Positions 1 through 34,000 of a stretch of 64,000 bases of DNA are shown in pieces. The first letter of the stretch is position 1, and each line of letters opens with the position of its first letter. Source of the stretch: Hydrolagus colliei (Eukaryota); the NCBI GenBank assembly GCA_035084275.1, contig CM068771.1:4030001-4094000 (forward strand), in the 5' to 3' direction. Under the pieces are notes generated by a model. That model did no database searches. It saw only the letters and a program-made list of their open reading frames with translations, and was not told the DNA's origin. The position numbers and the translations under genes were made by a program.

Positions 1-906
1 GAGCGCATCTTTTTCCATCTGTTCCTGTAACGCTGAGAGTTGTTGTTGGACTGAATCTAAATTTCTCTGAATCTCTCGCAGATTATTCTCCATCCGGTGT
101 AAAATCTCCCCCTCTCGCTGTCTGAGCTCTCGGATTACACGCTGCTCTCTGTCAGTGAGGCTCTGGTGCAGTTTAGCAAACTCAGCCGTGACATTGTTCT
201 CCAGACTGTTCGCCTGTTCCTGCAAAATGAAGTGTCAGACATCACACTGCGCACGGTAAAGAGAGAAACACGACTGAGATTCTAGACATCAGCCCCAACA
301 CAACTTACCTTAACTTGTGAGATCTTTTGCTTCTGTTTAACTTCAGCTGCTAGAGCAGCGGCCTTGCTCTGTGTGAGAGAAGCTAAGGAGGATTTCACTT
401 TCTCCTGGGAAAAAATACAAACGGTGAGAAAAAGCTTATTTATGCAAACACAGACTGAGATCAGACTGAGCAGAATCGATAAGATGGTGTTCTACCTTAC
501 AAACCTGAACAGCCTCCTGTATTGGTATGAAATTGTGATTTCTGTGTTTCGAAGCATCTCTACAAATCACACAGATCAATTTTTTATCAGTTTGGCAAAA
601 CAACTTCAGTTCCTTCCGATGCTCCTCACAGTGACGCTGACTGTCCCTCAGTGTCGCAGTCAACTTTAGACGTTGAGCTCTCTCCACCAGTCTCGCCAGA
701 GCCCGATTAACCTTCAGGTTACTTTTACCAACAACCTGTCGACATTCAGGACAGGAGTTTGTCCCCTGTGTTTCCCAGCTGCATGTGATACAGGAGCGAC
801 AGTAGTTGTGGCCACACTCCAGGATAACAGGTTCAGTAAAGAGAGCCAGACAAACAGGACAAATTAACTCCTCTGTCCAGCTTTGATCCTGGTGTCTAGA
901 CGCCAT
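1..906 (-). CDS. TRIM protein (RING, B-box 2, coiled coil; TRIM39/A33/NF7-like), 5' partial model. Exons 906-496, 404-309, 219-<1; continues off the window
   Basis: The ORF encodes a C3HC4 RING (CPVC..CGHNYC..C..CPEC) and a B-box (CEEH..LFC..D..LIC..C...H..H). GT-AG junctions give a 411-nt exon, a 96-nt exon (EKVKSSLASL...) and a helical exon (EQANSLENNVTAEFAKLHQ...), all phase 0, as expected for class IV TRIMs. Confidence 0.92.
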
Positions 907-2967: not shown

Positions 2968-4872
2968 TTAATCGACTTCCTCCACGGTTGGGCCGGTAGA
3001 TGGGCAGCTCTTGCCTGATCGCTGACCGCCCTCTGCCCCTCCCTGCCTCAGCCTGGCCATGACAGCACTACACACCCTCTCCAGCTCCTTCAGCTGGTGC
3101 TCAAACTCTTCCTTCTCCGCTGTCTGGTTTCCATCCAGCCAGTTGATGACCTGTTTGCACTTGTCCAGCACCTGCCGCCTGTCCTCCTCTCCCACCTTGC
3201 CCTCCATGCTCTTGTCCTCCATCGCGCTTTTGGCTGTGTAGACGAACGACTCCAGCTTGTTCTTGGCCATCACCCTCTCCCGCTGCGTCTCATCATCCGC
3301 CTTGTACCTCTCAGCCTCCTGCACCATCCTCTCGATCTCCTCCTTGCTCAGCCGGCCCTTCTCGTTGGTGATGGTGATCTTGTTCTCATTACCAGTGCTC
3401 TTGTCAGCGGCCGAGACACTAAGGATGCCGTTGGCATCGATGTCGAAGGTAACCTGGATCTGCGGGACCCCGCGGGGAGCCGGGGGGATTCCACTCAGCT
3501 CAAACTTGCCCAGGAGGTTGTTGTCTTTGGTCATGGCTCTCTCGCCCTCGTAGACTTGCACCAAGACATCGGACTGGTTGTCGGAGTAGGTGGTGAAGAC
3601 CTGGGTCTGTTTGGAGGGTATGGTTGAGTTTCTCTTGATGAGGGAGGTCATGACGCCTCCCGCTGTCTCCAGACCCAGGGACAGAGGAGTCACGTCCAGC
3701 AGGAGCAGATCCTGCACATTCTCAGACTTGTCGCCCATCAAGATGGCGGCTTGCACAGCTGCCCCGTAGGCCACTGCCTCATCCGGGTTGATGCTCTTGT
3801 TCAGCTCTCGGCCATTGAAGAAATCCTGTAGAAGCTTCTGGATCTTCGGGATGCGAGTGGAGCCACCGACGAGGACAACTTCGTGGATCTGAGACTTGTC
3901 CAGCTTGGCGTCTGTCAACGCTTTCTCCACTGGCTCCAGGGTTCCTCTGAACAGGTCTCCATTGAGCTCCTCAAACCGTGCCCTGGTGATGGAGGTGTAG
4001 AAGTCAATTCCCTCAAACAGTGAGTCGATCTCAATGCTGGCTTGGGTGCTTGAAGACAGAGTCCTCTTTGCTCTCTCGCAGGCTGTCCTCAGCCTCCTGA
4101 CTGCTCTCTTGTTCTGGCTGATGTCCCTCTTGTTTTTCCTCTTGAACTCCTGGATGAAGTGGTCGACCATACGGCTGTCAAAGTCCTCGCCCCCCAGGTG
4201 GGTGTCACCGGCTGTGGATTTGACCTCAAAGATCCCGCCGTCGATGGCGAGGATGGACACGTCGAAGGTGCCTCCACCCAGGTCAAAGATCAGGACGTTC
4301 TTCTCCCCCTGGCCCTTCTTGTCCAGACCGTAGGCGATGGCGGCTGCCGTGGGCTCATTAATGATGCGAAGGACGTTGAGCCCCGCGATCATCCCGGCGT
4401 CTTTGGTGGCCTGGCGCTGGGAGTCGTTGAAGTAAGCGGGCACCGTGATGACAGCGTTGGTGACTCTGGAGCCCAGATAAGCCTCGGCGATCTCCTTCAT
4501 CTTGGTCAGAACCATGGACGAGATCTCTTCGGGGTTGAACGTCTTGGACTCTCCCTTGTACTCAACCTGCACCTTGGGCTTGCCCCCCTGGCTCACCACC
4601 TGGAAAGGCCAGTGCTTCATGTCCGCCTGCACCACAGGGTCATCGAACTTCCTCCCGATCAGCCTCTTGGCATCGAAGACGGTGTTGGGGGGGTTGAGGG
4701 CCGCTTGGTTCTTGGCGGCTTCGCCGATCAGCCTCTCGGTGTCGTTGAAGGCCACGTAGCTGGGTGTGGTGCGGTTGCCCTGGTCGTTGGCGATGATCTC
4801 CACCTTGCCGTGCTGGAATACACCCACACACGAGTAGGTGGTGCCCAGGTCGATGCCAATCGCTGGGGCCAT
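2968..4872 (-). CDS. hsp70: Cytosolic heat-inducible HSP70 (HSPA1-type), intronless CDS, 634 aa
   Basis: Single ORF with [67 protein letters not shown] and C-terminal EEVD. No introns and no GGMP repeats. HSEs lie upstream. Confidence 0.98.
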
Positions 4873-5081: not shown

Positions 5082-5468
5082 TCTCAGTGTCAGTCTGTCT
5101 CAGTGTCAGTCTGTCTCAGTGTCAGTCTGTCTCAGTGTCAGTCTGTCTCAGTGTCAGTCTGTCTCAGTGTCAGTCTGTCTCAGTGTCAGTCTGTCTCAGT
5201 GTCAGTCTGTCTCAGTGTCAGTCTGTCTCAGTGTCAGTCTGACTCAGTGTCAGTCTGTCTCAGTGTCAGTCTGACTCTCAGTCTGTCTCAGTGTCAGTCT
5301 GTCTCAGTGTCAGTCTGTCTCAGTGTCAGTCTGTCTCAGTGTCAGTCTGTCTCAGTGTCAGTCTGTCTCAGTGTCAGTCTGTCTCAGTGTCAGTCTGTCT
5401 CAGTGTCAGTCTGTCTCAGTGTCAGTCTGTCTCAGTGTCAGTCTGACTCTCAGTCTGTCTCAGTGTCT
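5082..5468. repeat. 16-bp tandem repeat (GTCAGTCTGTCTCAGT)n, about 24 units, inside the predicted HSP70 5' UTR
   Basis: Directly visible, with occasional variant units (GTCAGTCTGACTCTCAGT). Lies between the TATA box and the ATG. Confidence 0.95.
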
Positions 5469-5712: not shown

Positions 5713-6062
5713 CTGACCTGGGGGAGGGGCTCAGACCTGGGGGAGGGGCTCAGACCTGGGGGAGGGGCTCAGACCTGGGGGAGGGGCTCAGACCTGGGGG
5801 AGGGGCTCAGACCTGGGGGAGGGGCTCAGATCTGGGGGAGGGGCTCAGACCTGGGGGCGGGGCTCAGACCTGGGGGAGGGGCTCAGACCTGGGGGAGGGG
5901 CTCAGACCTGGGGGAGGGGCTCAGACCTGGGGGAGGGGCTCAGATCTGGGGGAGGGGCTCAGACCTGGGGGCGGGGCTCAGACCTGGGGGAGGGGCTCAG
6001 ACCTGGGGGAGGGGCTCAGAACTGGGGGAGGGGCTCAGAACTGGGGGAGGGGCTCAGACCTG
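5713..6062. repeat. 19-bp G-rich minisatellite (GACCTGGGGGAGGGGCTCA)n, about 18 units
   Basis: Directly visible; two units carry GGGGGCGGGG variants. Confidence 0.95.
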
Positions 6063-6254
6063 TGGGGGTCAACAGGGAAAAGGGGCTCAAACGCCTCAAA
6101 ATCAGCCCCAAACTTCAGTAAAAAAACAATGTCTCCAAACTGCTGGCAATCTGCTGAGAATTAGCGGGAAAAACAGCCGGAATCAACCGCGAATTCGTGT
6201 GGAATTATTATTGTTGTTGTTGTTGTGATTGTGCGGAGACGTCCGGGATCAACG

Positions 6255-10159: not shown

Positions 10160-13100
10160 TTAAATTCTCACCGAGCAGATGGTCAGGGGCTCCGAATTTC
10201 CTCCCTCCTCGTTATACCAGGGACTGAAGAGAGGGTAGAGTTTCTCAGTGAAATTGTGGGTGAAAGTGTGCAGATGAGACATGTTATCGGGGTTGTAAAA
10301 TGACACCTGTCCCCCCTCATAGTCCAGGAACACTCCGATCTTCCCGGGTCTCACTGTCAGGGGCAGGCGGCTACGATGGGAGGTCAGAGCGTAATAGTCC
10401 ACACCGATCAAACACACGCACCAGACCCCACCCTCTGAGATTGGTTCTTTCCTGTCGACGGACTCTCTGGCCACCCCCACAATCCAGTCAGTCTTGTTGC
10501 CCACCCGCACCTCCCAGTAGTGTCCCCCCGACATGAAGCCTTCAGTTCCCAGCACAAACGGCCAGTTACTGAACCTCTTCGGGGTGTCGGGGAGCAGCTG
10601 CTGCTCATCTCCGGCTCTTACACCGGTCAGGTCCTCGGACAAGATCAGCTGAGGATGGGCAGTGTCAGGATCCAGAGTGATTGTAACTAGAGTGAGAATC
10701 AGACCATTACTCGAACAGTGAAACACATTTACAGCAATCAGTTCCTTATTTTGTTTCCGCCGCTTGGCTAGGTGTGTGCTCTGAGTGTCTGGCGATATAT
10801 CGATATATCGGTTATATTGGTATAATTTGTTATGCCGATATTGGAAATTTGAATATATCAAAAAATTCAGTATTTTAAAAAATCGATATATCACAAATAT
10901 CGGTATATAGTGTCCGCCGATATATCGATACATGGTTATAATATAAAATATAATATATAAAAGTATAATATAAAACTTTTTCAACATACCTTGTCGCCGG
11001 CATTGCAATCCTCCTGGGCCTAGAGCACGCACCTCCGAATGCGCGCGCATACACAGGTGATATCGATATATCGGTATACAACGATATGAGCCCACCAATA
11101 TATCGATATCGGAAAGTTTCCATATCGACGGACCCTAGTGCTCTGTGACGCTGGATGCCACAGTGCCATGGTCAGCCAAAGTGGCCAGAAGGTGTAATTG
11201 CTTTGCATGTGTATGTACCAGGGATGTGCAGGCGGGGTAGGGCAGGGTGGGGCAGTGCCTCGCCTTATGAAAATAAAAACTGTAACTTGCGGATGACTAT
11301 TTAATGGTTTATATGATTACAGTGCACATTTTTACATAATGCAAACGATTTTTAGTAGAAACTGCCAAAGTTATTCAACTAATTTTATTTAATAATTATT
11401 TAAATTGTCTAACTGTGATTTGATACGCCTGCGCCTTAAAAGCAACAGAAAGGCAGCGAGATGCCGTGCCTTTTCTACCCATTGAGTTGAATGTAGTTCC
11501 GACGCGCAGGCGCCTTCCTTTCTCAGTGTCTCAGTGACGGGAGACGTAGGCACAAGCCGCCGCGTGCCTTTCCTCTTTCCGTCCATCGATATCAGATCGC
11601 ATTGAAATGCCATCTCCGTGCAGGCGTATTTGCGGAACAAAACGATTGCGAAAAAGGCAGAGTCCGCTGCTGCCTTTGCCAAAGGTTAGTGACGGACTGA
11701 GGGAAGGGCCTACCCTGTCATTTTACCTACCGCAAGTCACTGGTTTGTACCTATGTATGTAAGAACGTATGTAAGTATGCGCTTTGTGACACACACTTGA
11801 CGCTTTGTAAGTTTGTAAGAGATTCCAGGAGCTACACTCAGACTGGTCAGTCCCAGTGTTTGTCGATGAATGCGGGGCAAGGTTATGGGCACAGTACGTC
11901 TTTTCCTGGTTACTGAGACTCTTACCTGCGTAGGGGGTAAACTTCCTCCTCTCTGGAAACAAGAAGAAAGGAGAAGGTGATCAGGAGACTGACAACTGCC
12001 AGCATATGCAGGTAAGGAACATTTTCACGTTTGAAGGTAATGTACAATCGGTGAGTGTTTGGAAAGCCTCTGACTCTTATCAATCAATCAAAACGTACAT
12101 TTATGTGGCGCCTTTCACGTCGAGAGGACGTCCCAAGGCACTGTACAGTCAGGTAGGGACAAGAGCAGGGGGGTAGGGGTCGGGGCAGGATTAAGGAGAG
12201 TAGGAGAATTGACTGTATATCTGTGGGCTTACACTGTTAAGAGCACTGAGATGTCACCCAGCATGGCGGGCGCTGTACAAGTGCAAGTTGGGCAGTTGCC
12301 GTGAAGTGAATTTTACAAGCCAAGAAAAGATGCTCATTCCAGTGTTTAAATCCCTCGATGCCTTGGAATCTCCCATCTCTCCAAACGCGTCTCCCTTCCT
12401 TCGCTGACCTGCCAAGCCTTAAGCCACAAAAGCCCCAAAGCTATGGAACTCCATCCTTCAAACCCTTCGCCTTTCCCCTTGATCTTCATTTTCAGGTTGC
12501 GTCTGAAGACCTTCCTCTTTGACCGTGTCTCTGATCACCTTCAGGTTCCACCAATATTAAGTCCCGTGGGTTACTGCCCCTCATGGATGGGATTATATGA
12601 ATGCAACTTGTTGTTGCTGTCAACTAACATTTATCTCTCTGGCTCTCAGATTTTATGCTGTTTGGAGTTCAGGTGATCTTATATCAATTAGCTTTTATGA
12701 CAACAAGGACAGCCATATATGATTTTACTTACCCAGTCTTCTCTGAAGATCTGTTGAATACAAAAAATGAAAATTGTTACCCAGCAAAAATTGTAATAAT
12801 AATAAAATAATAAATACTGTTTATGAATACAGTTTCACGCTGATGGATAATCTAAATGGTGTTTAAAAAAGTCATGTTACCCCACCATTTTTGTTCCCCT
12901 TACAATATGAATTTATATTTTGTCAGACTGCGCAGTAGCTGAAACAATCTATTGGAGATCCATTTCACCGCATCACTCCATCGTGTCGCAGAAGGTGNNN
13001 NNNNNNNNNNNNNNNNNNNNNNNNNNNNNNNNNNNNNNNNNNNNNNNNNNNNNNNNNNNNNNNNNNNNNNNNNNNNNNNNNNNNNNNNNNNNNNNNNNNN

Positions 13101-16100
13101 NNNNNNNNNNNNNNNNNNNNNNNNNNNNNNNNNNNNNNNNNNNNNNNNNNNNNNNNNNNNNNNNNNNNNNNNNNNNNNNNNNNNNNNNNNNNNNNNNNNN
13201 NNNNNNNNNNNNNNNNNNNNNNNNNNNNNNNNNNNNNNNNNNNNNNNNNNNNNNNNNNNNNNNNNNNNNNNNNNNNNNNNNNNNNNNNNNNNNNNNNNNN
13301 NNNNNNNNNNNNNNNNNNNNNNNNNNNNNNNNNNNNNNNNNNNNNNNNNNNNNNNNNNNNNNNNNNNNNNNNAAATACAATTAGTGTGACAATTGTTCCA
13401 TCAAAATTTGCTCCATCAAAACAAACAATGTTGTGGGACTTATTGAGAGATGTTACTGATGGAAACGTACCTTTGATCTCTCTGCGCTGTTTTACACTGT
13501 AGCCGACAAGAACACTCATCACCATTATGGCAAGTCCTAAGAGCAGTGAGGAAACCGTCAAATCCACTGGCACTTTGGGAAAGAACTCGTCTGTCAAGAA
13601 ATATAAAGAGACATTTAATGGATGCAGAGTGGCAGCCTGACTCAGCCATATTGCTCTTCTCTCTGAGTCAGAACATTGTGGATTTAGGTCCCCACGTTGA
13701 GATTTTGGATCACCTAGTCTAAGCCACTGGTTCCCAACCTCGGGTCCCAACCCAAATCAGGGTCGCGGGGGGTCCTCAGTTGGGTCGCGAAGGGTCATCA
13801 GAAATTTTTGTTGCTTTTTTTTAATGTTGTAACTTTTGCTTAATGTGGAAAATGCTTTTTTAGCGCTAAAAAAAAGTACCCGAGGAGATACCGCTGACCA
13901 ATTTGAGTGAAAGGCCGTATTTACGAGTTGCGCTGAGTCCACAAAAACAGATGGAGATAATGTTTTGGCTGAGCTACGCTTCAGTCACAATGCACGCATA
14001 CATCACCTCACGGCTGGACTATGGAAACTCTCCTCGTCGGCCTCCCCAGTTCCTCCATTCACAGGCTGCAGGTCATTCAAAACTCTGTAGCCCGTGTACT
14101 ATCCCGCACCCGCCTCCGCGACCACATAACCCCCACCCTCGCCCGTCTCCACTGGCTCCCCATCCTCCAGAGGATCGAGTTCAAGATCCTCGTCCTCACC
14201 TTCAAGGCCTTACACGGCCTTGCCCCGCCCTATTTAACAGATCTACTCTCCCCCTACACGCCCACCTGGACCCGTTCAACAGGACTTGACCTGCTCCAAG
14301 CCCCCGCCCGAACCGCCCCACCATCGGAGGCCGGGCCTTCAGTTTCTCCGCTCCCACCCTATGGAATGCCATCCCTCAATCCCTCCGTTTCGTCTCTTCC
14401 CTTTCCTCTTTCAAGGCCGGTTTGAAGACTTTCCTCTTCGATCGTGCCTTTTGTTCCACCCCGAACTCTTTTACCTCCCCTTCGTGTTTCACCCCTTCCC
14501 AAACACTCCCCTCCCAGCTCGGGTCACACGCCTCCTGTGCAGCGCCTTGGGACGTCCTCCCGACGTGAAAGGCGCTCTATAAATGTAATTTGTTGTTGTT
14601 GTTGTTGTTGTTGTCCACAATGTCGCCCCCTAAGGGTGGGAGGACCTGTTGGAGGCTAATTTGGGTTGCAGCAAAAATAAATGGGGACGCGAGGACCTGT
14701 TGGTGGTTAATTTGGATCACAGTGAAAAAATGTTGGGAACCCAACGTTGTGTTAGGTCTAAGCTGAAGTGTAGTGCTGGGGGTGGGGGGTGCTACATTGT
14801 TGGAGGTGCCATCCTTCAGATAAGACTGACGTCCAAAATTCTACCAGTTAGGCTGGTTCAATGGTTGAGTTCTATTTGGGTTTTAATACTGAAGAGACTT
14901 TCGCAATCCTCTCTAGGATTCCGAAAGTCAGTTACTGAGTGTTGTTAAGCTAATTAATTGTTAATGTTGTACAGTGCGAATTTCATCCAACGTGAACGAA
15001 AAGGAGATGTAAACATTACCGACCTGTAACTTTCAACTCGATCACTCGCTCCTCATACCATCCAGCGTACTCAACGAAACAGGTGTACGTTCCGTTATCT
15101 GACACCCGCACGTCTTCCAGTCTGAGAGACACATTGCCGTTCGTAAACTCCGCTGCAAACAGCTGTGTTCTGCCTCTGTAGCTTTGCTTCTGTTTGTCCA
15201 GTTGATCGCGTCCCGCCTTGTATAAGTGCACAGGGGGTTCGTATCTCAACCTGAACCATCTCACCTCCACACCCACTAGTGGCAGGTTTGTGGAACACTT
15301 ACAGTCCAGGACAACATGCGAACCAACAGTGGCTGGGACAGGGAGGGCAGGGCCACTGACTGTGAATCTCTCTGTTTAGTAACAAACATTGGATAGATTT
15401 AGGATTCATAAAAACATAAGAATTAGGAGCAGGAGGAGGCCATTCGGCCCCTCAAGCCTGCTCCGCCATTCAATAAGATCATGGCTGATCTTCTGACCTA
15501 ACTCTGATTACCTGCCCTATTCCCATATCCCCTAATCCCTCTATTTCTCAAAAATCTCTCAGTCTCAGCCTTGAAAATGTTCAAGGACTGAGCGTCTACA
15601 GCCTTCTGGGGGAGTGAATTCCATAAATTCACTACCCTCTGAGTAAGAAATGTTTCCTCAACTCTGTTCTAAAAGGCTGACCCTTAATTTTAAGACTGTG
15701 ACCCCTGATTATAAGATTCTCCTATCAGGGGAAACAGTCCCTCAGTGTCTATCTAGCCCTTTAAGAATCTTATATGTTTCAATAAGATCCCCCCTAATTC
15801 TTCTGTACTCTAGAGAATACAGCCCTAGTTTATTCAACCTATCCTCATAGGTCAGTCCCCTCATCCCAGGAACTAACCTAGTGAATCTAACCTAGTGAAT
15901 TCACTCAGACAAAGGCTATTTAGAATAGTGAAGGGCTTGGTTCAGGATAATTCCCTTCACTCATATAAGTGAATAAACATGTTTCTGCTTAAGGTTGATA
16001 AACAGAGTACGGAGGAGAAAGGAAACGTGCCTTTGGTTTAGCCCCACCTGTATTTGGAACCTAAATGCCTTTGTTCATCCGCTGGCATATATATTATCAG

Positions 16101-16255
16101 CTGCCAGTGTGTGAATCACACTCACTCCCAGCCACCGCCTTTGCCTTCAGCAATTTAACACAAACAGAAATCAAACAGATACAACATGTTTCCTTACCAG
16201 CCAGTGAGAGGGGGAGCGCGAGCCAAAGGACCCGAATACAGAGTTTCCAGATCAT
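10160..16255 (-). CDS. Butyrophilin-like gene A, predicted 365 aa. Signal peptide 16255-16198, IgV 15371-15024, TM 13590-13471, 18-nt exon 12750-12733, 27-nt exon 11952-11926, PRY/SPRY (B30.2) 10686-10160
   Basis: All junctions are GT-AG phase 1 and join in frame: [19 protein letters not shown] / RFTVSGP..DCKC..VRW..GNVSLRL..DNGTYTC / EFFPKVP..TM / LQRRL / RRKFTPYA / [36 protein letters not shown]. Each exon has a counterpart in gene B. An assembly gap (12998-13372) in one intron could hide extra small exons. Confidence 0.85.
10785..11138. mobile_element. Non-autonomous DNA transposon (hAT-like MITE rich in GATATCGATAT subterminal repeats)
   Basis: Imperfect inverted ends (gtgtctggcgatat / atatcgacggaccctag) and repeated atatcgatat motifs, in the last intron of gene A. 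Confidence 0.55.
11219..11742. mobile_element. hAT-type MITE
   Basis: CAG...CTG ends flanked by an 8-bp duplication GTATGTAC/GTTTGTAC (7 of 8 match). Confidence 0.6.
12998..13372. other. Assembly gap (N run)
   Basis: Run of N. Confidence 1.
13725..14755. mobile_element. hAT-Charlie-like MITE interrupted by an L2 insertion
   Basis: CACTGGTTCCCAACC left end; exact 8-bp TSD GTCTAAGC (13717-13724 and 14756-14763); related copies at 23369-23702 and about 57885-58145. Confidence 0.8.
13991..14614 (+). mobile_element. 5'-truncated young L2 LINE
   Basis: Nearly identical by eye to 63497-64000; (TTG)n tail; CACAATG duplication on both sides. Confidence 0.85.
14850..14947 (-). pseudogene. Decayed remnant of the 3' half of the IgC exon of butyrophilin-like gene A
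   Basis: Aligns by eye to gene B IgC (about 27447-27536): ggttcaatggttgagttctatttgggttttaatactgaagagac vs ggttgaatggattatttctatttgacttttaacactgaagagac. TGG>TGA and TCA>TGA stops, a 7-nt length difference, and no 5' half or acceptor. Confidence 0.85.
15408..15900 (-). mobile_element. CR1-clade LINE 3' fragment
   Basis: CATAAGAATTAGGAGCAGGAG..GGCCATTCGGCCCCTCAAGCCTGCTCCGCCATTCAAT tail typical of shark CR1/HE1-type repeats; similar piece at 57545-57600. Confidence 0.7.
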
Positions 16256-18649
16256 CTTCTCAGGGCCTGCCCAGTGAGATCACAGCTAGTTATAACACAG
16301 CAGCAAATCAGATCATTACACACAGAGGTTTGTGATCTAGCTATACTAATCAAGATGAAATCTGTGTGTGCGTATATCCCTAAGTCAAGCCAATAACACA
16401 ATAATTGATTGATGTAGAGACATGATTTATACCTCATCAGAAAGTTCTTGCAAAGTGAGAGTGCCATGGGCATATTTTTTCAGAGAACCTCCTATGGTTG
16501 CTGAGCTTTATTTAAAAACATACTTTAATTTAGACAACTATATAACGTATGCGCGTCATACTGCAACAAAGCTGCAACAGAAGAAATCACACAGGAAGAC
16601 ACGTCTATACTTGTTCCAGAAATATATTATATTCTGAAACAAAGCTGCGACAGAGAAAACACAGGCATATTTTAAGGGGCGATCTCCTATCATTAAGTAA
16701 AGCGTAATAATCTAATATAAAATCTAATAATATGATGTAAGTACAATAATATAACAGAAAGTACAATAATATTGAAATGTACATTCCCTGTTTGATCCTT
16801 CGGTTGCAAATGCAGCTGTACACGAGCAAAGCTGGTAATTAGTAAAAAATATTCAAATGTAAATGAACAATTCTGTGATCTTACAATATTTACTTGGCAT
16901 TTACACACACAGCAGAACAAACTGCCTTCTCTGTTGGAATAATGATCTGGGCTGTTTAATGTGACAGACCCCCCCCCACACTGGGGGGGTCTCCATGAGG
17001 TAGTTTTGAGGAAGAAACATGTTATTTTTAACTGCTATAATGTGCTCCTCTCCTCCACCTACTCAGAGCTGCTCCTTATTCACCTCCAGCGAGGTCCATG
17101 TCGGAGACGAAGGCAGGTCCCATTCCCCTCACTCCTCACTGGCCTCCAATTCTCAGCGTTTAAAACAACGAACTGGTAATAAACTGACTGCAGCCGCTCT
17201 GGCTTTATCATTTACGCAAACCTGACGTCCTCAATTTACATCAACGATCTTAAACACAGAGAGCATCTATTTCAGATTTAAACTCTACATCACCTGAGGT
17301 AAAGAGAAAACCAGACATTCCTATCACTGCGATACAGTAAAAAGTATTTTTTGCTCGTAAACAATTCCAATGTCATTTTAGGCAACAATTTCTGATGCGT
17401 ACCTGTTGGTGCTTTGCCTTCAAAGAGAAAGAATCTTCACAGGCAAATCCAGTATTCAACGTGTGACCGGGAATGTGATGATTCCCCGGTTTGTCAAAGC
17501 GTCCCGTGAGTTTCCGCGGGTATCACATCACAAAAGAATGTACAACAAACAAACAGGCGATTCAGTCAAACCGGTCCGTGCAGTGATTATAGTCCGCAGG
17601 CATCTTCATTCATTCTTTGGCTCCCTCCCATACCCATCTATTCACCTCTACCTCACATTAAGCTCTAGCTTTGTCTTACACACGCCTGATAATAACCCTT
17701 CCACCCCCCAAAAAAAACCAACCAATAAGAAATATTGGTCATTTCAATCTACGACTGTTTGTAGGGGGGGGACGCTGATGTGCGCAATCGGCTGCCGCGT
17801 TTCGCCCACAAATATCCAGTCGATTCACTTTACAGTATATTCTGCGAAGCGTTTTGAGACGTCGATAAGATGTGAAAAGTGTTGTATCAAATGTGAGGAT
17901 TATTATTATTATTATTATTATTATTAGCTAAACATTTTGTCCGCAGAATATATGGTCAATCCAACTTACAATCTATTGTCAAAGTCACGTGCTATATCGA
18001 AAGCAAGGATGACTGTAACTTGTGATTCAACCATCACTTCAGGCAGCGGGTTCCACAATCTCTCTCCCTGCCCTCTCCCCCACCTTGCCTCTCCCCCACG
18101 CTCGGGTCCCAACTCCTGACTGTTCAGCACTTTGGGATGTCCCCCCGACATGAAAGGGGCTCCATAAATATAATTTTGTTGATGCTGTTGTTATATAGTG
18201 TTGGTTACAATGTGTGACAGTGTTCATACGCGCAGTGTGTGTGAGACAGTGTGTCTCAATCTGAAACAATCTGGGCAGGGAGGTATACACTTAATTGAAA
18301 AACTGATCCGCAAAACATGTACAGCACAGAAACAGGCCAAACTGGTCCGAGAACACTGCACATCAGTATCCACCCATTCCTTACTCCCTCAGCTTCCATT
18401 CAGTCCTCCTCTCTTTTCATGTGACTGTCTCCTGACTGTGCTCAAAGGGAGTGTCTTAAAAATATTTGCGCTTTCCTCTGTGTGTTATTAAACTGTCTAC
18501 ACTCCCAATAAAGGCTGTGAGTGGAGTAGAAACAGGGAGGGTATTCAAGACCCACCTTGTGTAGTGTTATTTAAAACGCAAAATGCAATGTAGATTCAAT
18601 TGGTCCTTTAATTCAAACTTTACAAGTCAACCTTTGCTTCAAACAAATA

Positions 18650-21129: not shown

Positions 21130-24100
21130 TTAAACTATCACTGGGCAGATTTTCAGAGGCTTGCAATCACAACCAGGGCGGAAGAGGGGATAGAATTTCC
21201 CAGTAAAAGTGTGGGTGAAAGTATAGAGATGAGACATGTGATCGGCATTGTAAAATGACAACTGTCCGCTCTCATAGTCCAGGTAAACTCCGATCTTCTC
21301 CGGTCTCACGATCAGGGGTAGGGGGGTGAGAGGCGACGTCAGAGCCTGATAGACCCCGGCCACCAGCCACAGCCCCCAGACCCCACCCTCTGTTGACCAT
21401 GTGATTGGTTGTTTCCTGTTGACAGATGCACTAACCATTCCTACAATCCATTCAACATTGTTCCCCACCTGCGCCTCCCAGTAATGTCTCCCTGATGTGA
21501 AGCCCTCAGACCCCAGGACAAAGCGAGATTCACTAAACCTCTTTGGGTTGTCAGGGAGCGACTGCTGTTTGTCTCCGAGTCTCAAACTGGTCAGGTCCTC
21601 AGACAGGATGAGCCAGGGATGGGCTGTGTCAGGATCCAGAGTGACTGTAACTAGAGTGAGAACCAGACCATTAATGTCGGACACATTGACAATTGTAAAT
21701 AAGATGATCTTCAGCTTCGGGAGAGAAGCCTTTGTGTCAAACACTGACATCTCCTGGGAACAGAATCCAACACAAAGGCTCAGAGTCTGTGGGGGGGGGG
21801 GGGGGGGGGGGTTGTATGTGGGGGGTAGGAGGAGTTTGAGAGGGTGTATGTAGGGGAGGGATATGAGGGTATGTGGGGGAGATGTGAGAGTGTGTGTTTG
21901 GGTATGTGTAATGGCGTGTGTAGTGGGGAGAATGTGAGGGTGTTTGTGTGTAGTAGGTGCTGAGATGTGTGTGCGTCGCAGTGGCAGTGTGTGCAGGGTT
22001 GGGCAAGTGAGGGTCCGAGCATGAGAGGAATGTGAGGGTGTGGGGGGATTGTGAGGGTGTGGGTGTGAGGAGGGCGTGAGGATGAGTGTGTGTAGAGGGT
22101 GAGAAGGTGTACATGTGGAGAATGTGTGGGTCTGTGAGGAGAGATGTGAGGGTTTGTGGGGTGGGGAATGTGAAAGGTGTTTGTGGGGGGTTTGGAGTGT
22201 GTGTGGGGTGGGGGGGGGGGGTTGGTGATGGGCAGCTGGGATTGCGCTGGATGTTTGTTGCTTGGTTACTTAGACTCTTACCTCCACAACTGCGCATCCT
22301 TTTCCACTCTAAAACAAGAAGAAAGAAGTGATCAGACCTTTGGCGGTTCCAATCTCAGTCACGTTCCTCTCTCACTCTCACCTGCCCTCCTCCCTCATTC
22401 CCTGATTGATGCACTCCATGACATGCTCGCTCATTCACTCTCCCTCTAAATGTGTGTGGTGTTCACAAGACAATGTTGTCTAAGGGAAGCAAAGTTAAAG
22501 GTGTGAAACAGCCCAACGTTTTGAATTAAATAGTCCTTTAGAGTCACGTAGCTCAGTGATTAGAGCACTCGCCTGACAAGCGAAAGACCTGGGTTTGATT
22601 CCAGGCAGGGCAAAATCTTGTGCAAGTGTCCTTATTTCACTCGCCTGATAATAATCCCTCAAAAAGTATTGATCATTCCAATCTACGACTGTTTGTGAGA
22701 CACTGCTGTGCACAATTGACTGCTGCGTTTCTCCCACAATATATACAGTCAATTCACTCTAGAGCATATTCTGTGATGCGCTTTGAGACGTCCAGAAGAT
22801 GTGAAAAGCGCTATTATCAAATGCAAGGATCATTATTATTAATAATTCGTGGAATAGAATCATCGAAATTTACATCCCAGAAGCAGGCCATTCACCATCT
22901 AGTCTGTATGGGCTCCCTTAGTACGATGTTCATACAAAAGCTTCCCTGCCCTATCCCTATAGCCCTTCAATCCTCCATGCATCATATACCTGTCTACTTC
23001 TCTGATTACTTCCCTTCTGTTCTGCCATTGGAGGTTATGAGGGAGTCAACCACTACACTCTGAAACTCTGGAACAGTGTCCCTCAATCCCTCCACCTTGC
23101 ATCCCCTTCCCCCTTTTTCAAGCCCCGCCTGAAAACCTTCCTTTTCCTTTTCCACCCACCATCCCCAGACTCAGAATCAGGCTCCCTGTTACCCTGTGTG
23201 AGGCTGTTATATAAGTGTACGTTGTTGTTGAGAATGAGATTAATCACAACATGAGATTGTCATTATATTTTGATGACTTACCCAGACTCTTCTCAAGATC
23301 TGGAGGACACAGAACAAAACAGTTAGAAACCAATCCTGAATACAATGCGTTTAGTGATCATTCTACATCAGTGGTTCCCAAGCATTTTTTTGCTGCGACC
23401 CTAAATTGGCCACCAACAGGTCCTCCTACCCTTAGGAGGGGAAACGACATCGCAACAGAAGCGAAGCTCAGCCAAGACGATATCTCCGTCTCTTTTGTGG
23501 ACTCAGCGCAACTCGTTAGTACGGCCTTTCATACAAATTGGTCGGCGGTGTCACCTCGGGCACATTTCAGCATTAAAAAAAAGTATTTTCAGCGTTAGAA
23601 AAAGCCAAAAAAAATTCTGAAGACCCTTCGGTCTTCAGACCTGAAGACCCCCCCCCCCCCGCGACCCTGATTTGGGTCGGGACCCAAGGTTGGGAATCGC
23701 TCTTCTACGTGTTTATCACATTAACCAGCTCTAAACAACGCAAAGTAAACCTCAACACAATTATATGAGGTTTGAAGTACAATAAAATGTACATTTACAC
23801 AGCGCATTTCACTGTGGGGAGACATCCCAAAGCATTGGCAGCAGTGTTGTGAGGGAGGGGTTGAGTCAGACGGTCTCTCGGATTGAGTTGCAGAGAGTAG
23901 GGGTGGATAGGCCGAAAGCCTGACCTGCTGATGGTGGGGAGGCCAATGAGGCGACATGAAACAGGTCATTGAGAGCATGACCAATTGTTTCATAAACTTA
24001 CATTCTTACGCAAATCCAGTGTTATGATAAGAGATGTTACTGCTAGGAACTTACCTTTGATATCTCGGCGCTGTTTTACACTGTAGACAACAAGAACGCT

Positions 24101-27100
24101 CAGCACTATTATGGCAAGTCCTAAGAGCAGTGAGGAGACCACCAAACCCACTGGCACTTTGGGGAAGAACTCATCTGTCAAGAAGTGTGAATAGACATTT
24201 AAACATATATAGTGTTATCAAACAGCAAATGCCTTTATTTTCAAGATCCTTGTGCTCATCTTGAAAGCCCTCCATGGCCTTGCTGCCCTCTACATCTGCA
24301 TCCTCGTAACTTGCCCTCTGCCTCTGCTCCAGGCTGCTTCATATCCCTCACCTCACAGACGGGCCTTCGGCCACTTTGCCCCCACTCTCTGAAACTCCAT
24401 CCCAGAGTCACTGTGCCTCGCCCCCTCCCTTGACCCCTTCAACACGTATCTCAAGACCTCTTTAACCTTGCCTTTGGGTACCCTCCTTCCCCCCTCTGCC
24501 CACCACTCTCTCCAAGCCTAAACCCCAGCTCGGGTCCAAAACATCAAATTGTCCTCCCGATGTGAATGGCTCTATACAAACGTAATTTTTATGTTGTTTA
24601 TTTATCCCCATGACACAGTATTACACACAGCTCAGTAGCTGTCACAGGCTCAATGTACTTTTGAGGGGAGAGAGGTTGGGTCTTCTTTGAGCGAAACTGG
24701 CTCCAATGGTGCTGTGCTTGGTGACGGAATGTCAGAATAAAATTCATTCCTTGACACCGTATCCCCGAGAGGCAGATGGGTGAACGTGTGGGTCAGAAAA
24801 AGGTGAACACCAAACACAGAGCGGGGAAGAAGCCAGTTTGGAGAGACTTTTACAAGAAATGATGGGAGAGGAAGAAATGGAACTCATTGTAGCTCCTTGA
24901 GAAGAAGGCAGGGTGGGCAGCTCCACAGCTTTTGAGGAGTTAGTTCAGTAGAAGATTTTTGAGAAGAAGGTGATTGGCAGCATTTCTGAAAGATGAATAC
25001 CGTGCCAGAGGAAAGTAAATCATTCCTAACGTCTATTTTATTTCAGTTTACAAACATGATTTCTGGAAGAATCTCTAACGTTTATTGCCAACAAAACAAA
25101 TTAGAGACCCCAAAGAGAAGTGAAAATGGGCAATGGAACAATTGTTAGACAGAATCCCAACATATTCTTCAAATCATATAGCAACAAGAGGGTAATCAGG
25201 CAACAAGTTAAATCTAAAGGGACCCAAAGTGTATTGAAGAGAAGGCTGATCAGGAGATAGTGAATCTACCAAATGACCACATTTTGGCATTAATTAAACA
25301 GGAAGTTCACTAACATAGCAATGATGACAGAGCGATACCTGGCAACTCATGAACCTAAGATCAGTGAATTGAATGGTTGATATGGATGGAGCAATAAATA
25401 GAAGCAAATCATTGAAATAAATGAAAAATGTATATGTTGATCTTAAAACTGACATTCAGAACGGTGAACCTGTGACTTCTTACCCTGCTGCCTCCATGTG
25501 GATGTGTCTAATTATTTTTCAGCTCTTCACTGAGAAGTGAATAAGATAACATTGATAATAAAATCATAAGAATCCTTGCCTTTAATATAATGCCTTAATG
25601 TGTCTTTGAGACATCTGAAAGCACTTCACAGAATATGCTACAGGGAATTGATTGTATATTTTGCATGGCCAACGTTTCGCCCGGCCGGGAATCAAATCCA
25701 GATCCTCTTGTGAGCGAGTTGACTGCTCTAACCACTGAGCTACTGGACTCCACTGTTGCAATGTTGGCTGTGAGTTATAAAGTATTTGTTCATTCAGAAT
25801 TAGCAGCTTGAATAGGTTAGCAGGACGGGTGGGTAAGTGGGAGTACTCAGGTCAATTCAGAATTCATTTCAATTTGGTGTTATAATGGGAAGCTGGTGAA
25901 TTTGCTATTTGAAAGAAAGAGATTAGGTGAACCGCGTCTTCTAGACTGATCTTACTTTAGTTAACAAGTTCTACAAATCTTCATCATAGTTATCAGACTA
26001 TTATTAGTATAGTGGACCTTGCAAGCACGTGACATGGGTTCTATCCTTGGTAGGGTGTTGCGCAAGTTTTCTTAGTTCACGCGTCTCTTTTTAATCTGGG
26101 ATTAACAACAACAACGATAACAAAATTACACTTGTATAGCGCCTTTTAAGTCAGAAATGGGAACCTGGTTGATTGTCGATTGGCAGATCAATAATAATAA
26201 TAATCCCTAAAAAAAAATCTTAATAGAAAATAAATAGTTTTGATATTGGGTCATTATTGGGACCATTGCTCCTTATGATCTGTGTAAATGGTTGTACTTG
26301 AGCATAGGGAATTATATTTCTAAGTTTACAGATGATAAGAAGCGAGGAAAAGTAGTAAACAGTGAGGAGACTAGTAGCAGACTGCAAGAGGATAGAGATA
26401 GGCTGGTAAAATGGGCAGACACTTGGCAGATGAAGTTTAATGTGGAGAAAAGCAAAATGGTGCATTTTGGGAGGAAGCATGAGCAGAGGCAATACAAGCT
26501 AGATGATAAAATCTTAAAAGGGATGACGGAACAGTGAGACTTAGGGGTTCCAAAAAGTAAATTGTTGAAGGTGACAGGAAAGGTAGGCAAAGCTGTTGAA
26601 AAAATATACGGATACTAGGCTTTATTCATAGAATATGAAAGTCAGGATCTTATGATAAATCTTTGTAAAACACTGGTTAAGTTTCAGCTAGGGTATTGTG
26701 TTCAGTTCTGGGCACCACACTTTAGGAAAGACGTCAAGGCATTGGAAAGGGTGCAAAGGAGATTTACCAGGAGAGTAGGGAATGAGGGATTGGCAAAATG
26801 AGGGACTTCATTTGTGAGGAAAGGCTAGAGTTTTGCCCACAAATATACAGTCGGTTTCCCTGCTCTCCTTCCCCCTACCCCGATCCCTCCCCTTGTCATC
26901 TTTCCCCCCTTTCTCCCCAAATCCCACTTCCATTAATGTTTGCTGTGAACAATTTGGCTGCTGGAAAGTGAGTTGTTCTGATCTGGAATACATTGCCTGA
27001 AACAGTGGTGGAAGTTGATTCAATTACAGCTTTTACAAAATAAGAAGAAAAATGATTTTGTGTGGTCAAGTTTGTAGAGTTATGGGAGAGAGTGGAGGAG

Positions 27101-29366
27101 TGGGATTGATTTGGACAGCTCTTTTCATTTCAGAGTTGGCATCGACATGATGGGCCAAATGTCCTCCTTCTGAGTTGTACAATTCCAGGATTCTCCGATC
27201 GTTTGGGCACTCAATCCACGACTGTTTGTGGGATCCTCTGTGTGCAATTGGCTGCCACGATTTTCGCCCACAAATATAAAGTTAATTCACTTGATAGTAT
27301 ATTCTGTGAAGTGCTTTGAGATGTCTTGAAGACATCAAAAGCGCTATATCGAATGAAAAAATTATTATATTTTAGTATTTGCTGACCTGAGATTTGGAGT
27401 TTTCCTTCTTGTTCATATTCTGATTTGCCAACCCGACACCTGATCTTGTTGGTTGAATGGATTATTTCTATTTGACTTTTAACACTGAAGAGACCTTTAG
27501 AATCCTGTTTGACTGTCCAGTTACTGAGTGTTGATAATTTGTTTCCCTGATCATCAACCCACAGAACCTCTGGTGCTGGGAACCATCCACTGGATTCACA
27601 CAACAGCCTCACACCATCATTGTGTTGTCCTTCAACATGAATCCAAGGCTGACTGCCAAGGCCTGGAAGAGACAGGAGATGTGAAGCCGACAATGTTGAT
27701 ACTTAAGCATTAGACTGAATTATAGATTTTACTGAAGGCATGTTTGTAACATTCTGAAAGAATATGCATGTAGCTTTTTTCTTGTTTCTAATTTGTGACG
27801 TTGTCATCGTAAGATAGCTAACAAATAATAAGGATTTTTACAGATATGTCATATATAAAAAAGGTAAACGTTAATTACCCAGAACCTGCAATATTATCGC
27901 TGCTTCTTCATACCATCCGTCATAGTCAACGAAACATGTGTACTCGCCTTGATCTGTCCCTCGCACATTTACTAGTCTGAGAGACACATTGCCATTGATA
28001 AACTTCTCTACAAACAGATGTGTTCTGTGTCTGTAGGTTTCATCCTGTTTCTCTAGTTGATGACGTCCCTCTTTGTATAAGTACACAGGGGAGTCATATC
28101 TTGTTCTGAACCATCTCACCTCCACACCCTCTAGAGGCAGGTCTGTGGAACACTTACAGTCCAGGACAACATCCGAGCCAGCAGTGGCTGGGACAGGGTG
28201 GGCAGGGCCACTGACTGTGAATCTCTCTGTTTAACAACAAACAATGGACATAGTTAGGACAAACTCAGACAAACTGAAACGGACAGTCACTGACCTATTA
28301 CAGTAAAAGCCCGTTTATCCGGCACCCGACCAACTGTAACTTCCGTATAACCGGCACATCAAAAAACAGGTCCGCATTCGATTAACCGGAATTTATCCGG
28401 AAAAATGCATTTTAATATTTTGTTTTCATTTTCAGCCAAATATCCAGCATGCGCTTTAACCGGCATTGGCCATTCTCTAAAGACCGGCCTTGAAGGAGGT
28501 GAAGGAGGGAGCGAGGCGAAGGCGAAGGTGAAGGGACTGTGGGATGGAGTTCCAGAATGTGCGAGCAGAGAGGCTGAAAGCCCGTCCGCTGATGGTAGGG
28601 GGTGTCAGGCATGGGATATGGAGCAGGTCGAAGCCCGCTAAATGGAGGGGACGGGGGGGGTTGATAGGGGGACAGCAGGTCGGTGAGGTAGGAGGGGGCA
28701 AGACTGTGAATGGCCTTGAAGTTGAGGACGAGGATCTTGAATTGGATCCTCTGCAGGATGGGGAGCCAATGGAGGCAGGCGAGGGTGGGAGAGATGTGGT
28801 CACGGAGCCTGGTGAGGGTGAGGACATGAACTGAGGAGTTCTGGATGATCTGCAGTTTGTGGAGGGAAGAACGAGGAGGGAATTTCCAAAGGGAAACAAT
28901 GCCCAGGCTCCTGACACAGTGGCACCCAGTGGGAACTGCAATCCGCTATTCCGAATTCTGGAGGATTTGATCGGACATCGGAAAAAGCGTACGGATTTTG
29001 AGATCTTGCTGGTTTTAGGGAGTTGAATTTCAGAATGTCAGATTATCGGGGTTTTCCTGTACTGTGTGGGTGAAAAGAACACAGCAGTGTCCAACAAACA
29101 GTTGTGGATTGAGTGATGAAATGATTATCATTTAAAGAAATAAGGGCAATGTCAAATGCAAGGATTATTATTAATAATCCTTATAGCAGTTAGCGGTTAT
29201 CAGCGTGTGAATCACACTCACTCCCAGCCACCGCCTTCAGCAGCTCTCCCTTTACCTTCAGCAATTTAACACAAACAGAAATCAAACAGACATAATGTGT
29301 TTCCTTACCAGCCAGTGACAGGGGGAGCGCAATCAATAGGACCTGAATACTGTGTTTCCAGCTCAT
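21130..29366 (-). CDS. Butyrophilin-like gene B, predicted 455 aa. Signal peptide 29366-29309, IgV 28226-27879, IgC 27662-27387, TM 24174-24055, 18-nt exon 23299-23282, 27-nt exon 22308-22282, B30.2 21650-21130
   Basis: Canonical BTN architecture; all junctions GT-AG phase 1. IgC reads [38 protein letters not shown]; EWKRMRSCG precedes [19 protein letters not shown]. Confidence 0.9.
21790..22230. repeat. GT/G-rich low-complexity tract in the last intron of gene B
   Basis: Degenerate gtgagggtgtgt-like units and poly-G runs. Confidence 0.8.
23369..23702. mobile_element. hAT-Charlie-like MITE, same family as 13725-14755, opposite orientation
   Basis: CAGTGGTTCCCAA start; TSD TTCTACAT/TTCTACGT; interior is the reverse complement of the other copy. 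Confidence 0.8.
26250..27180 (+). mobile_element. Degenerate CR1 LINE, RT C-terminus plus 3' end
   Basis: [41 protein letters not shown]; later [12 protein letters not shown]-like sequence; stops and frameshifts. Confidence 0.85.
28301..29059. mobile_element. Tigger/pogo-like MITE with a nested L2 fragment (about 28475-28880)
   Basis: TA|CAGTAAAAGCCCG ... GGGGTTTTCCTG|TA ends; family members at 59940-60140, 60855-60931 and 61810-61910. Confidence 0.7.
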
Positions 29367-31090: not shown

Positions 31091-34000
31091 CATATTATGC
31101 TGGTTCTGATCCTCAATCCAGACACCCTTTCCATGTTTTCCTTCACATCACTCCTATGTTTTGCTAATCTCCTTGCACCCGTAGCTGTAACACACCTCGA
31201 ACTTGCCAGTGTATTGTCCTTATTCTGTTTTACAGTAGCCACCATTGGCCTGGCCTAGCTAGCCCTAAAGCCCTCCCGACGTCTGTACATTTTCTGCCAG
31301 ACTCAATGCGCTTTATCACCTCCAATTTGGTATTTAAAGTGATGACTTTGCAGGGTTTCTGGCCGCTAGAGGTATTACCGCTGCTCATTTCACTTATTGC
31401 TCTCTTTCCCGACTTGCCATAAACGAGGTAGAGGCTGTAAATCGCTGGAAGTTGCTCGGGAATGTTTGGAAATTACTGTAATGTTGACGTGGCGTGGTGT
31501 CGATTCAAAATCAGCTGCTTTTAAACGATGATGTGGCGACATGCTATTAGCTAGTTCAAACGCTTGGGTTTACCCCCGAATAAGCTATGGACTGTGCGTA
31601 TGGACAAAAAGGACGCGCAAAATACGACCGCTATATTCAAAATATGCACTGCGCAATAAAGCACTGTACCAAATGCAAGGATTAGTATCATTTATCAATC
31701 AATCAATCAATCAATAATTACATTTATGTAGCGCCTTTCACATCCCAAGGAACTGAACAGTCAGGTAGGGATCAGAGCGGCTGGGGGGGGGGGGGGGGGG
31801 GGGGAGGGGTTGGGGGAAGGAGAGGAAAGTAGGAGAATTGACTGTATATTTGTGGGCGAAAATCGGCAGCCAAACTGCGCACAGCAGCGTCCCACAAACA
31901 GTCGTGGAAGTGAGGTCAGGGGAGAAAGGGGGGAAATATGGCCAGGGGAGGGGTCAGGGGAGGGGGGAAGGAGAGCAGGGAAACCGACTGTATATTTGTG
32001 GTTTATGTAACAGGATTTCGATGCCTTGAATAATAACAACAATACTGATCCTCGCATTTGATGCCGTCTGCCTTATCGTAAACGCTCTGAGACACCGCCC
32101 GGCGTGGAAAGCGCAATGTAAATCAAAGTTGTTGTTGTTGTTGTTGCTATCACGTCATTGAGACGCCTTGAAATGCTTCACAGAATACACCGTAAGGTTG
32201 GGTTTCGGGGAGAAATGTGGTAGCCGATCGCGCACAGCAGCATTCCACAATCATGGATCAAATGAATCGTGTTGGAGGGGATTATTCTCCACGGAAAGCG
32301 AAGAAACTTGCCGAAGAGATATCATCGTACCAAATCGGTCGGCTGTCTGATAATAAAACACAACAAAATGGTTGTGATCAAACGTACCGCGAACGGTAAT
32401 ATTAATAATTCTTGCATTTGATATAGTGCTTTTCACATCCTGTAGATGACTTAAAACGCTTCACAGGGTATATTTTAAAGCGAATTGACTGTATATTTAT
32501 GGGCAAAACGTAGCAGCCAACAGCAGCGTCCCCACATACAGTTGTGGATTGAAAGTTATTGAAATTGAAAACATTTAACACATTTTTTTATTGAGGGATT
32601 ATCCTAAGTCTTCGCCCTCTCCAACTCTCTTTTCCCCCGACCCTACCCTGACCACCCCCCACCACCCACCCCCCCAACTACCCCACCACCCACTGCTCGG
32701 GTCCCTACCCAACTGTTCAGCCCCATGGGACATCCTCCCGACGTGAAAGCCGTTCTATAAATGTAATTTTGTTGTTGTTGTGGGCGTGCGGAGTTAGGAA
32801 ACTTGCCTCACGTTTCCGCCCTGACCTGCCTGGAATCGAACCCGGGTCTCTCGCTTGCGTACCAGCTACAGGGCGAGAGTTTGGGATCAGTTTGGAATGG
32901 TAGAAGACCAATAAAAGGTTATACTTTCATTTGGACAGTAGGTGGCGGTGAAATACAGACTGTAAAGTCTTTCACTTTGCAGTGCGTAAGTAAAGTCAAA
33001 CCAATTTTCAGCGACGACATGTGACCAGACCAAAGTGACCTTTATGTTAGTTAGTTCAGTGGCTTTGAGTGAGTGTTTTGTTGGTTGGTTCGTCGACTGG
33101 ACAGGCTTGTTTTTTTTTAAAAAGTTACACAAAAAAATTCACAAACCACGAAATTCCACTCGCGGTTTGTAAACTTCGTCAACATCGTCCTCACCAGTGA
33201 AGCTGTGATGTTATCAACGTGAGCATTGGTAACTGTGCGAGGAGTCTGGCAGGAGTCTATACTTGGGCTGGCAGAAATTGGTAATTTAATAATATCAATC
33301 CTTGCAATTGATGTATCGCTCTTCACGGCTTCTAAGACGTCTCAAAGCGCTTCACAGAATATACTGTGAAATGAGTTTTATATTCCACAAGGGCATGTAC
33401 TCTATATAAGTATTACCAGTGTTTAATAATAATAATCCTTGCGTTTGAGATAGCACCTTGTTACATCGTTGAGGCACTCGACTATATATTTGTAAAGTGG
33501 ATTGAATGTGTATTTGGTGGATAGCCAATTGCACACAGCAGCGTCCCTAAATTTAATGCAATTCAACTTTAAATTTTAAATACACCAACATTCACTTAGA
33601 ACTGGGCATTGTATACCTTCTCATTGTATCATTCTCACCCGCACCAAGCTTCGCTCCCCCGTTAACCCCCAGTCCTTGCCAGGCTTCACTGGCTCCCTGT
33701 CCCGAAGAGGATCGATTTCGAGATCCTCACCCTGGTTTTCAAATCCTTCCACTCCTCTGCACCCCCCCATCTCTCTGATCTCCTCTCTCCTCAAACCAGC
33801 ACCCGTTGCCTTCGCTCCACCAGATCTGGCCTCCTCGATGTCCCCCCCCCGAATACTCCGCTCCACCCCCGGCGGCCGTGGCTTCAGCCATTACGCCCCG
33901 AGGCTCTGGAAATCCCTTCCTCACTCCCTTTGCCTCGCCACCCCATAAACTCCATCCCATAATCCCTTCGCCTTGCTCCCTCCCTTGCGTCCTTCAATGC

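Follow-up and report, generated by a model that had tools for sequence, protein, structure and literature searches.

A 64,000-nucleotide stretch of the Hydrolagus colliei genome (contig CM068771.1, positions 4,030,001 to 4,094,000; the window, below) carries two tandem butyrophilin-like (BTN) genes, A and B, on its minus strand. Very probably, gene A is intact, is maintained by selection as the gene of a type I membrane protein, and derives from an IgV-IgC-TM-B30.2 gene (TM, transmembrane) through physical destruction of the IgC exon, before its split from the copy found in Callorhinchus milii, the elephant shark. As predicted from the sequence, the product starts with a signal peptide and one IgV domain; a stalk of ~10 residues leads to a TM helix, and behind it come ~25 juxtamembrane residues, for which two mini-exons code in part, and a PRY/SPRY (B30.2) domain. 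The exons, and a gap in one of the introns, are as follows:

16198-16255, minus strand: leader exon, with the ATG and signal peptide, a phase-1 end and the donor gtaagg
15024-15371, minus strand: IgV exon, 348 nt, with Cys43, Trp58 and DxGxYxC117; Pfam V-set E 5.4e-13
13471-13590, minus strand: stalk/TM exon, 120 nt, phase 1/1, with the hydropathy peak
12733-12750, minus strand: juxtamembrane mini-exon 1, 18 nt, D-LQRRL
11926-11952, minus strand: juxtamembrane mini-exon 2, 27 nt, E-RRKFTPYA
10160-10686, minus strand: B30.2 (PRY/SPRY) exon, which contains the stop codon; PRY E 5.7e-23, SPRY E 9e-22
12998-13372, unstranded: run of Ns, 375 nt, inside the intron between the TM exon and mini-exon 1

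Spliced, the gene A exons form an open reading frame (ORF) of 365 aa that is open throughout, with ag/gt at every boundary and phase 1 at every junction; the IgV, TM, linker and B30.2 exons are thus open, as a first-pass annotation of the window had held. That annotation had also read the junction of the phase-1 IgV and TM exons as KVT-D-EFFPK, and the spliced model gives the same peptide (...ELKVT-D-EFFPK; ...AAAGTTACAG joined directly to ACGAGTTC...). In the translation, the IgV Cys-Trp-Cys core reads C43, W58 and DNGTYTC117, and the TM helix stands out as a 19-residue Kyte-Doolittle peak of 2.43 at residues 146-164. Pfam finds V-set, PRY and SPRY domains in both genes; gene B has in addition PF22705, the butyrophilin IgC domain (C2-set_3), at E 4.6e-22, and gene A has no PF22705 match. 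The best PDB sequence matches of gene A are full-length BTN2A1, BTN3A1/3 and BTNL3/8, each in two stretches (IgV and B30.2).

The upstream neighbor, gene B, has the exon plan of gene A plus an IgC exon, which is intact and 276 nt long, as the first-pass annotation had it, and serves here as the reference for what gene A has lost:

21130-29366, minus strand: gene B as a whole, an IgV-IgC-TM-B30.2 butyrophilin of 455 aa
29309-29366, minus strand: leader, gene model
27879-28226, minus strand: IgV exon, gene model
27387-27662, minus strand: IgC exon, intact, 276 nt; PF22705 E 4.6e-22
24055-24174, minus strand: stalk/TM exon, gene model
23282-23299, minus strand: mini-exon 1, gene model
22282-22308, minus strand: mini-exon 2, gene model
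21130-21650, minus strand: B30.2 exon, gene model

Gene A has the butyrophilin hallmarks: a signal peptide followed by an IgV domain, a single TM helix, a one-exon B30.2 domain, phase-1 junctions and mini-exons. What it lacks is the membrane-proximal IgC domain (PF22705), which is typical of the butyrophilin family, not obligatory, because the accepted family members ERMAP and MOG are also without it (PMC6017450).

The lost exon has left a trace. The intron between the IgV and TM exons of gene A contains a short piece of IgC exon, flanked on one side by a stub of the original intron and on the other by a short interspersed element (SINE):

14949-15023, minus strand: intron stub, ~73 nt after the IgV donor, homologous to the start of the gene B IgV-IgC intron and common to C. 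milii
14854-14948, minus strand: IgC exon remnant, 95 nt, which matches the gene B IgC exon
14742-14853, minus strand: 3' part of an antisense tRNA-derived SINE, which abuts the remnant and is also present in the C. milii intron; more copies lie in the C. milii locus
13731-14741, unstranded: nested transposon insertion, window only; a miniature inverted-repeat transposable element (MITE)-like element split by a 3' fragment of a long interspersed element (LINE)
13627-13730, minus strand: 5' part (tRNA-like head) of the same antisense SINE, split off by the insertion
13591-13626, minus strand: TM-acceptor region of gene A, 36 nt, homologous to gene B

The remnant (14854-14948) aligns with 27450-27537 of gene B at 74% identity over 96 columns, with an E value of 4e-11 in a search of 8 kb against 10 kb and of 1e-13 locally, and within the 64-kb window it matches nothing else but the gene B IgC exon. 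It spans nt 126 to ~215 of the 276-nt exon, the 3' limit being uncertain by ~25 nt (exon nt ~200-220). The first-pass annotation had placed the fossil accurately, and had called it the 3' half of the exon; it is the middle third. Two stop codons, a frameshift and a missing splice acceptor had been reported for it, and all are there: read in the gene B frame, TGG has become TGA through a 1-nt deletion, and after it come an 8-nt insertion and then a second stop. Neither Ig cysteine codon is left, nor is the acceptor or the donor. When all open phase-1/1 AG..GT intervals over the remnant were enumerated as possible cryptic exons, the yield was limited to pieces of 30-51 nt, none of them with Ig content.

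The same structure is found in C. milii. The homologous locus (L001; MU249860.1 of GCA_018977255.1, an assembly independent of that of the window) is 72-90% identical to the window at the DNA level, and its A-like gene has the exon sizes of gene A (58/348/120/18/27/527) with identical phases, while its nucleotide identity is lower by 13-28%. Its IgV-TM intron is 387 nt long, without N runs, and holds the same stub, remnant, SINE and 36-nt acceptor region. The C. milii remnant begins at the same base as that of the window (TTAACAACACTCAGTAACT...) and reads LTTLSNWMVREDFEGLLSVKSQMEKKP and then a stop; unlike the window remnant, it is free of frameshifts over the first 27 codons, and the intron is without the window's 1-kb nested transposon insertion. 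Because the remnant, the 5' breakpoint and the SINE are common to both, the IgC loss predates the divergence of window A and C. milii A (dS 0.31). The IgC status of related species, which the first-pass annotation had proposed as a check, thus speaks for its reading: C. milii A is IgC-less as well.

The protein databases point the same way. The best match of gene A is C. milii XP_042200766.1 (365 aa, 82% identity, 100% coverage, no IgC Pfam match), and nearly all top protein matches of the window genes come from this species. The 90% cluster of XP_042200766.1 includes NP_001279822.1/AFK10745.1/UniProt K4FSR3, 'Butyrophilin', of 365 aa, with the junction NVI-D-DFFPK. The C. milii record goes by the name 'butyrophilin subfamily 1 member A1-like', and its IgV-TM junction falls at the same position as that of gene A. 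To judge by accession type, NP_001279822.1/AFK10745.1 is probably transcript-derived.

The two loci share the order B-like, A-like, HSP70, and the C. milii locus differs from the window by a 17.5-kb duplication of the A-like 3' exons and HSP70 (14327-18066 versus 31860-35603; HSP70 at 21923-24090 versus 39287-41480), in which the B30.2 copies are protein-identical. Either a recent segmental duplication or an artefact of assembly could account for this. The NCBI A-like model covers 25.6 kb, reaching to the second copy, and the exact mini-exon 2 peptide is found only there.

How the exon was lost can be read from what flanks the remnant. The ancestor would have been an IgV-IgC-TM-B30.2 gene like the upstream neighbor B, inside a holocephalan butyrophilin cluster. 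The IgV-IgC intron of gene B is 216 nt long, and the gene A stub resembles its beginning; since only ~73 nt of stub lie between the IgV donor and the remnant, a deletion has taken out ~270 nt: the remaining, larger part of that intron, its acceptor and nt 1-125 of the IgC exon. On the other side an antisense SINE now abuts the remainder and 36 nt alone separate the SINE from the TM exon, so that the last ~60 nt of the exon, the donor and nearly all of the next intron have been lost as well. The IgV exon would then have been spliced directly onto the TM exon, in frame because all ectodomain exons are phase 1 (IgC being symmetric, 1/1). These events are older than the split between the window lineage and the C. 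milii copy; from then on, purifying selection has continued to act on the coding exons, and the remnant has been drifting at the neutral rate. The IgC exon was thus destroyed by structural events, a deletion together with a SINE or deletion event, with later drift, not by gradual point decay. The first-pass annotation had described a butyrophilin 'converting' to a single-Ig receptor by an exon that 'decayed in place': the exon loss with its visible fossil stands, but the process is not ongoing, as it predates the C. milii split, and it was not gradual, as a deletion and a SINE were involved.

Several details of the intron stand beside this account. A remnant extending to the 3' end of the exon was suggested by a global alignment and by MAFFT, and rejected: the stretch in question is the antisense SINE, which has other copies in the C. 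milii locus. ARAGORN, run on 13400-15100 for the tRNA-like head of the SINE, returned no match. The 1-kb insertion at 13731-14741 splits the SINE and is missing from the 387-nt C. milii intron. Its MITE-like element (13731-13985 plus 14623-14741) has an unbroken copy in a gene B intron (23373-23696), and its LINE 3' fragment (13986-14622) belongs to the same family as ORFs with reverse transcriptase at 56896-57528 and 62554-63822.

The IgC-less gene has been under purifying selection since the IgC loss. The ratio dN/dS (omega) was computed for window A against C. milii A, with bootstrap ranges, and changes on the two branches were polarized with gene B. With dN 0.095 and dS 0.31, omega is 0.31 for the whole gene (bootstrap 0.21-0.45), 0.42 for the IgV (0.21-0.79) and 0.22 for B30.2 (0.12-0.34). 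Kimura two-parameter (K2P) distances between window and C. milii are 0.27 for the remnant and 0.34 for the surrounding intron: remnant and intron evolve at the synonymous rate (K2P 0.27 versus dS 0.25-0.31, with dN 0.095). Each branch departs from neutrality, the C. milii branch with 27 nonsynonymous and 24 synonymous changes (omega ~0.34, p = 0.0002) and the window branch with 42 and 24 (omega ~0.53, p = 0.011). Nine IgC-bearing holocephalan BTNs have 116 invariant residues in common; of these, window A retains 104 and C. milii A 109, and the Ig Cys-Trp-Cys core and the PRY/SPRY motifs are whole in gene A. The first-pass suggestion that gene A is functional thus finds indirect support in the open ORF, the splice sites, the omega of 0.31, the window branch (~0.53, p = 0.011), the retained invariant residues and the NP_/AFK record from C. 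milii. Gene A is presumably expressed in the source species.

Some observations weigh against so favorable a view of gene A. Constraint is weaker on the window branch (~0.53), where 12 family-invariant residues are altered versus 7 in C. milii, and recent relaxation along this branch is conceivable. A transcript-type record exists for the C. milii counterpart only; exact look-ups of the window's A, B and HSP70 proteins in the protein collection returned no entry. By its accession type, AFK10745.1 would come from the 2012 set of C. milii full-length cDNAs (PMC3466250), but the supplementary data published with that set contain no butyrophilin entry. Window A and the C. milii A copy may be orthologues of two species or old paralogues, and the 375-nt run of Ns lies inside a gene A intron.

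Part of this evidence would fit a gene that was functional after the IgC loss and has since become, in the source species, an unexpressed or decaying copy, a young pseudogene with its ORF so far spared. The ratio of 42:24 nonsynonymous to synonymous changes against 27:24 in C. milii, the 12 altered residues among the 116, the 1-kb transposon insertion in the intron and transcript support from the C. milii record only would all be expected of such a copy. However, none of the six exons is interrupted and their splice sites are canonical, the window branch keeps an omega below 1 (p = 0.011), the hallmark motifs of the Ig and B30.2 domains are whole and the insertion is intronic; decay in progress is therefore rather improbable, and maintenance of gene A as a coding gene is favored.

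Alternatively, gene A might be expressed chiefly within a read-through product of B and A, of which it would form the 3' part: XP_042200683.1, an 838-aa model from C. milii, fuses a B-like and an A-like protein, and in the window B and A are in tandem with 4.9 kb between them. Expression of this kind is very unlikely. Gene A possesses an ATG, a signal peptide and a leader exon of its own, conserved with the B leader region; the NP_/AFK record is a stand-alone 365-aa protein; and the fusion is a computed model whose internal signal peptide makes no biological sense. XP_042200683.1 (P0123) is probably an annotation artefact, yet it confirms the tandem B-like/A-like order.

A third possibility is that gene A, as an ERMAP orthologue, goes back to an ancient lineage with a single IgV, the remnant being either similar by chance or a patch that conversion brought in from gene B. 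The layout is indeed that of ERMAP (PMC6017450), and shark 'ERMAP-like' proteins match gene A at 44% identity. Yet the remnant lies in the right place and orientation, with E values of 1e-13 to 1e-18, and at the same position in C. milii, and the 367-aa 'ERMAP-like' protein of Stegostoma is a predicted exon-skipping isoform of an IgC-bearing gene. In a maximum-likelihood (ML) tree, window A and two C. milii IgC-less proteins form a clade (100/100), nested in a holocephalan BTN expansion (100/100) whose other members all bear IgC, and this clade is far from the shark 'ERMAP-like' clade. Descent from ERMAP is hardly to be credited on this evidence. ERMAP is represented in the tree by the shark 'ERMAP-like' proteins, not by mammalian ERMAP. 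Given the tree placement and gene A's own IgC remnant, the loss is best read as lineage-specific, converging on the ERMAP layout. Loss independent of ERMAP, which the first-pass annotation had proposed, agrees with the position of the A clade inside the IgC-bearing expansion.

That a real IgC exon was collapsed or lost in assembly, as the N runs in the window and the repeat-rich intron might suggest, is scarcely credible when GCA_018977255.1 has the same IgC-less intron without N runs, the 365-aa record has no IgC and the N run of gene A sits in another intron. Mis-assembly and the gap had been named in the first-pass annotation as what could overturn its reading, and neither does so: the C. 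milii intron is free of both IgC and N runs, and no coding exon is expected within 12998-13372 in view of the gapless colinearity of the 365-aa gene A model with the 365-aa C. milii record.

The surroundings of the two genes are vertebrate DNA with abundant SINE and LINE debris, in which the order on the minus strand is the 5' part of a TRIM gene, HSP70 and then genes A and B. The other features of the window are:

1-906, minus strand: 5' coding part of a TRIM gene, with RING, B-box and coiled coil, the remainder lying outside the window; resembles C. milii 'zinc-binding protein A33-like' and 'nuclear factor 7'
2968-4872, minus strand: HSP70, an intronless ORF of 634 aa just downstream of gene A, 89% identical in DNA to the two C. 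milii copies (21923-24090 and 39287-41480 of L001)
5082-5467: tandem array between HSP70 and gene A, 16 nt x 24.6 copies, 94% match
5715-6066: second tandem array between HSP70 and gene A, 19 nt x 18.5 copies, 96% match
36181-36541: second run of Ns, 361 nt, outside genes A and B

The divergence between genes A and B is a mosaic: dS is 0.33 for the IgV, 0.32 for the TM and 0.55 for the B30.2 exons, such that the 5' halves look younger than the B30.2 exons (dS between window A and C. milii A is 0.31). The pattern suggests conversion or exon exchange within the cluster. The B30.2 exons of A and B (10160-10686 and 21130-21650) are 73-76% identical to those of C. milii TRIM A33-like proteins and 70-72% identical to those of other C. 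milii BTNs, so that the TRIM match is equally close or closer; this hints at exchange or homogenization of B30.2 exons between BTN and TRIM genes in the region.

What the gene A product might do follows from what is known of its relatives. The V-shaped interface of the homodimers or heterodimers of human BTN2A1 and BTN3A1 is built from their IgC domains (PMC7083227). Consequently, if the same holds here, the gene A product would have a shorter ectodomain without IgC-IgC dimer contacts and would not dimerize in this way; its IgV would be held ~10 residues above the membrane, and a sensing or signaling role of the cytoplasmic B30.2 domain would be kept. It is possible, albeit tentatively, that holocephalans kept a convergent ERMAP-like BTN beside its IgC-bearing parent and that it acts as a distinct partner or decoy, a membrane-hugging IgV unable to dimerize through IgC but with B30.2 signaling retained. 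If true, this would be a natural experiment on the contribution of IgC to butyrophilin function.

The significance of the locus lies in the history of a domain more than in its product: no new kind of molecule is revealed, as gene A is the counterpart of a catalogued C. milii protein. It offers a datable domain loss through exon destruction in an immune-receptor family, with the fossil in an intron, lesions common to two lineages and measurable selection; it shows that butyrophilins arrived at the IgV-TM-B30.2 (ERMAP-type) layout more than once; and the IgC-less/IgC-bearing paralogue pair is a test bed for the roles of IgC, e.g., in dimerization and ectodomain height. Literature searches on C. 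milii butyrophilins and on IgC exon loss returned no description of the IgC-less gene. The fossil exon in both lineages and the convergence appear undescribed in the searchable literature, whereas the C. milii protein is already in RefSeq and UniProt.

The architectural plasticity of the butyrophilin family is well known from ERMAP, MOG, BTNL2, BTN3A2 and Skint, and chicken BG proteins have a single-IgV ectodomain. ERMAP combines IgV, TM and B30.2 without IgC, and MOG has a single IgV ectodomain without IgC, as the first-pass annotation had stated in placing gene A beside them (PMC6017450). Gene A shares the layout of ERMAP but belongs to a separate lineage: it stands among IgC-bearing holocephalan BTNs and keeps its own IgC remnant, and common descent with ERMAP, represented here by the shark 'ERMAP-like' proteins, is not found. 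MOG and chicken BG, set apart from gene A by description rather than by sequence, are without B30.2. Canonical butyrophilins (BTN1A1, BTN2A1, BTN3A1 and gene B) share with gene A the IgV, TM and PRY/SPRY domains, phase-1 exons and mini-exons; they differ by the IgC domain and, in human BTNs, by the IgC-IgC dimer interface (PMC7083227).

The closest parallel in protein layout comes from splicing. Since the IgC exon is symmetric (phase 1), it can be skipped optionally, and isoforms that omit an intact IgC exon are predicted in Stegostoma tigrinum (P0100 versus P0114) and in turtles (P0049, P0061); one of the IgC-skipping isoforms is named 'erythroid membrane-associated protein-like' though its gene is IgC-bearing. 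The 367-aa isoform X3 of Stegostoma and the turtle isoforms thus have the protein layout of gene A. In these genes, however, the exon is intact, skipping is optional and the isoforms are computed models, whereas in gene A the exon is destroyed and the short form is the sole product. The short form may already have been tolerated before the exon was destroyed, which would fit the predicted skipping isoforms.

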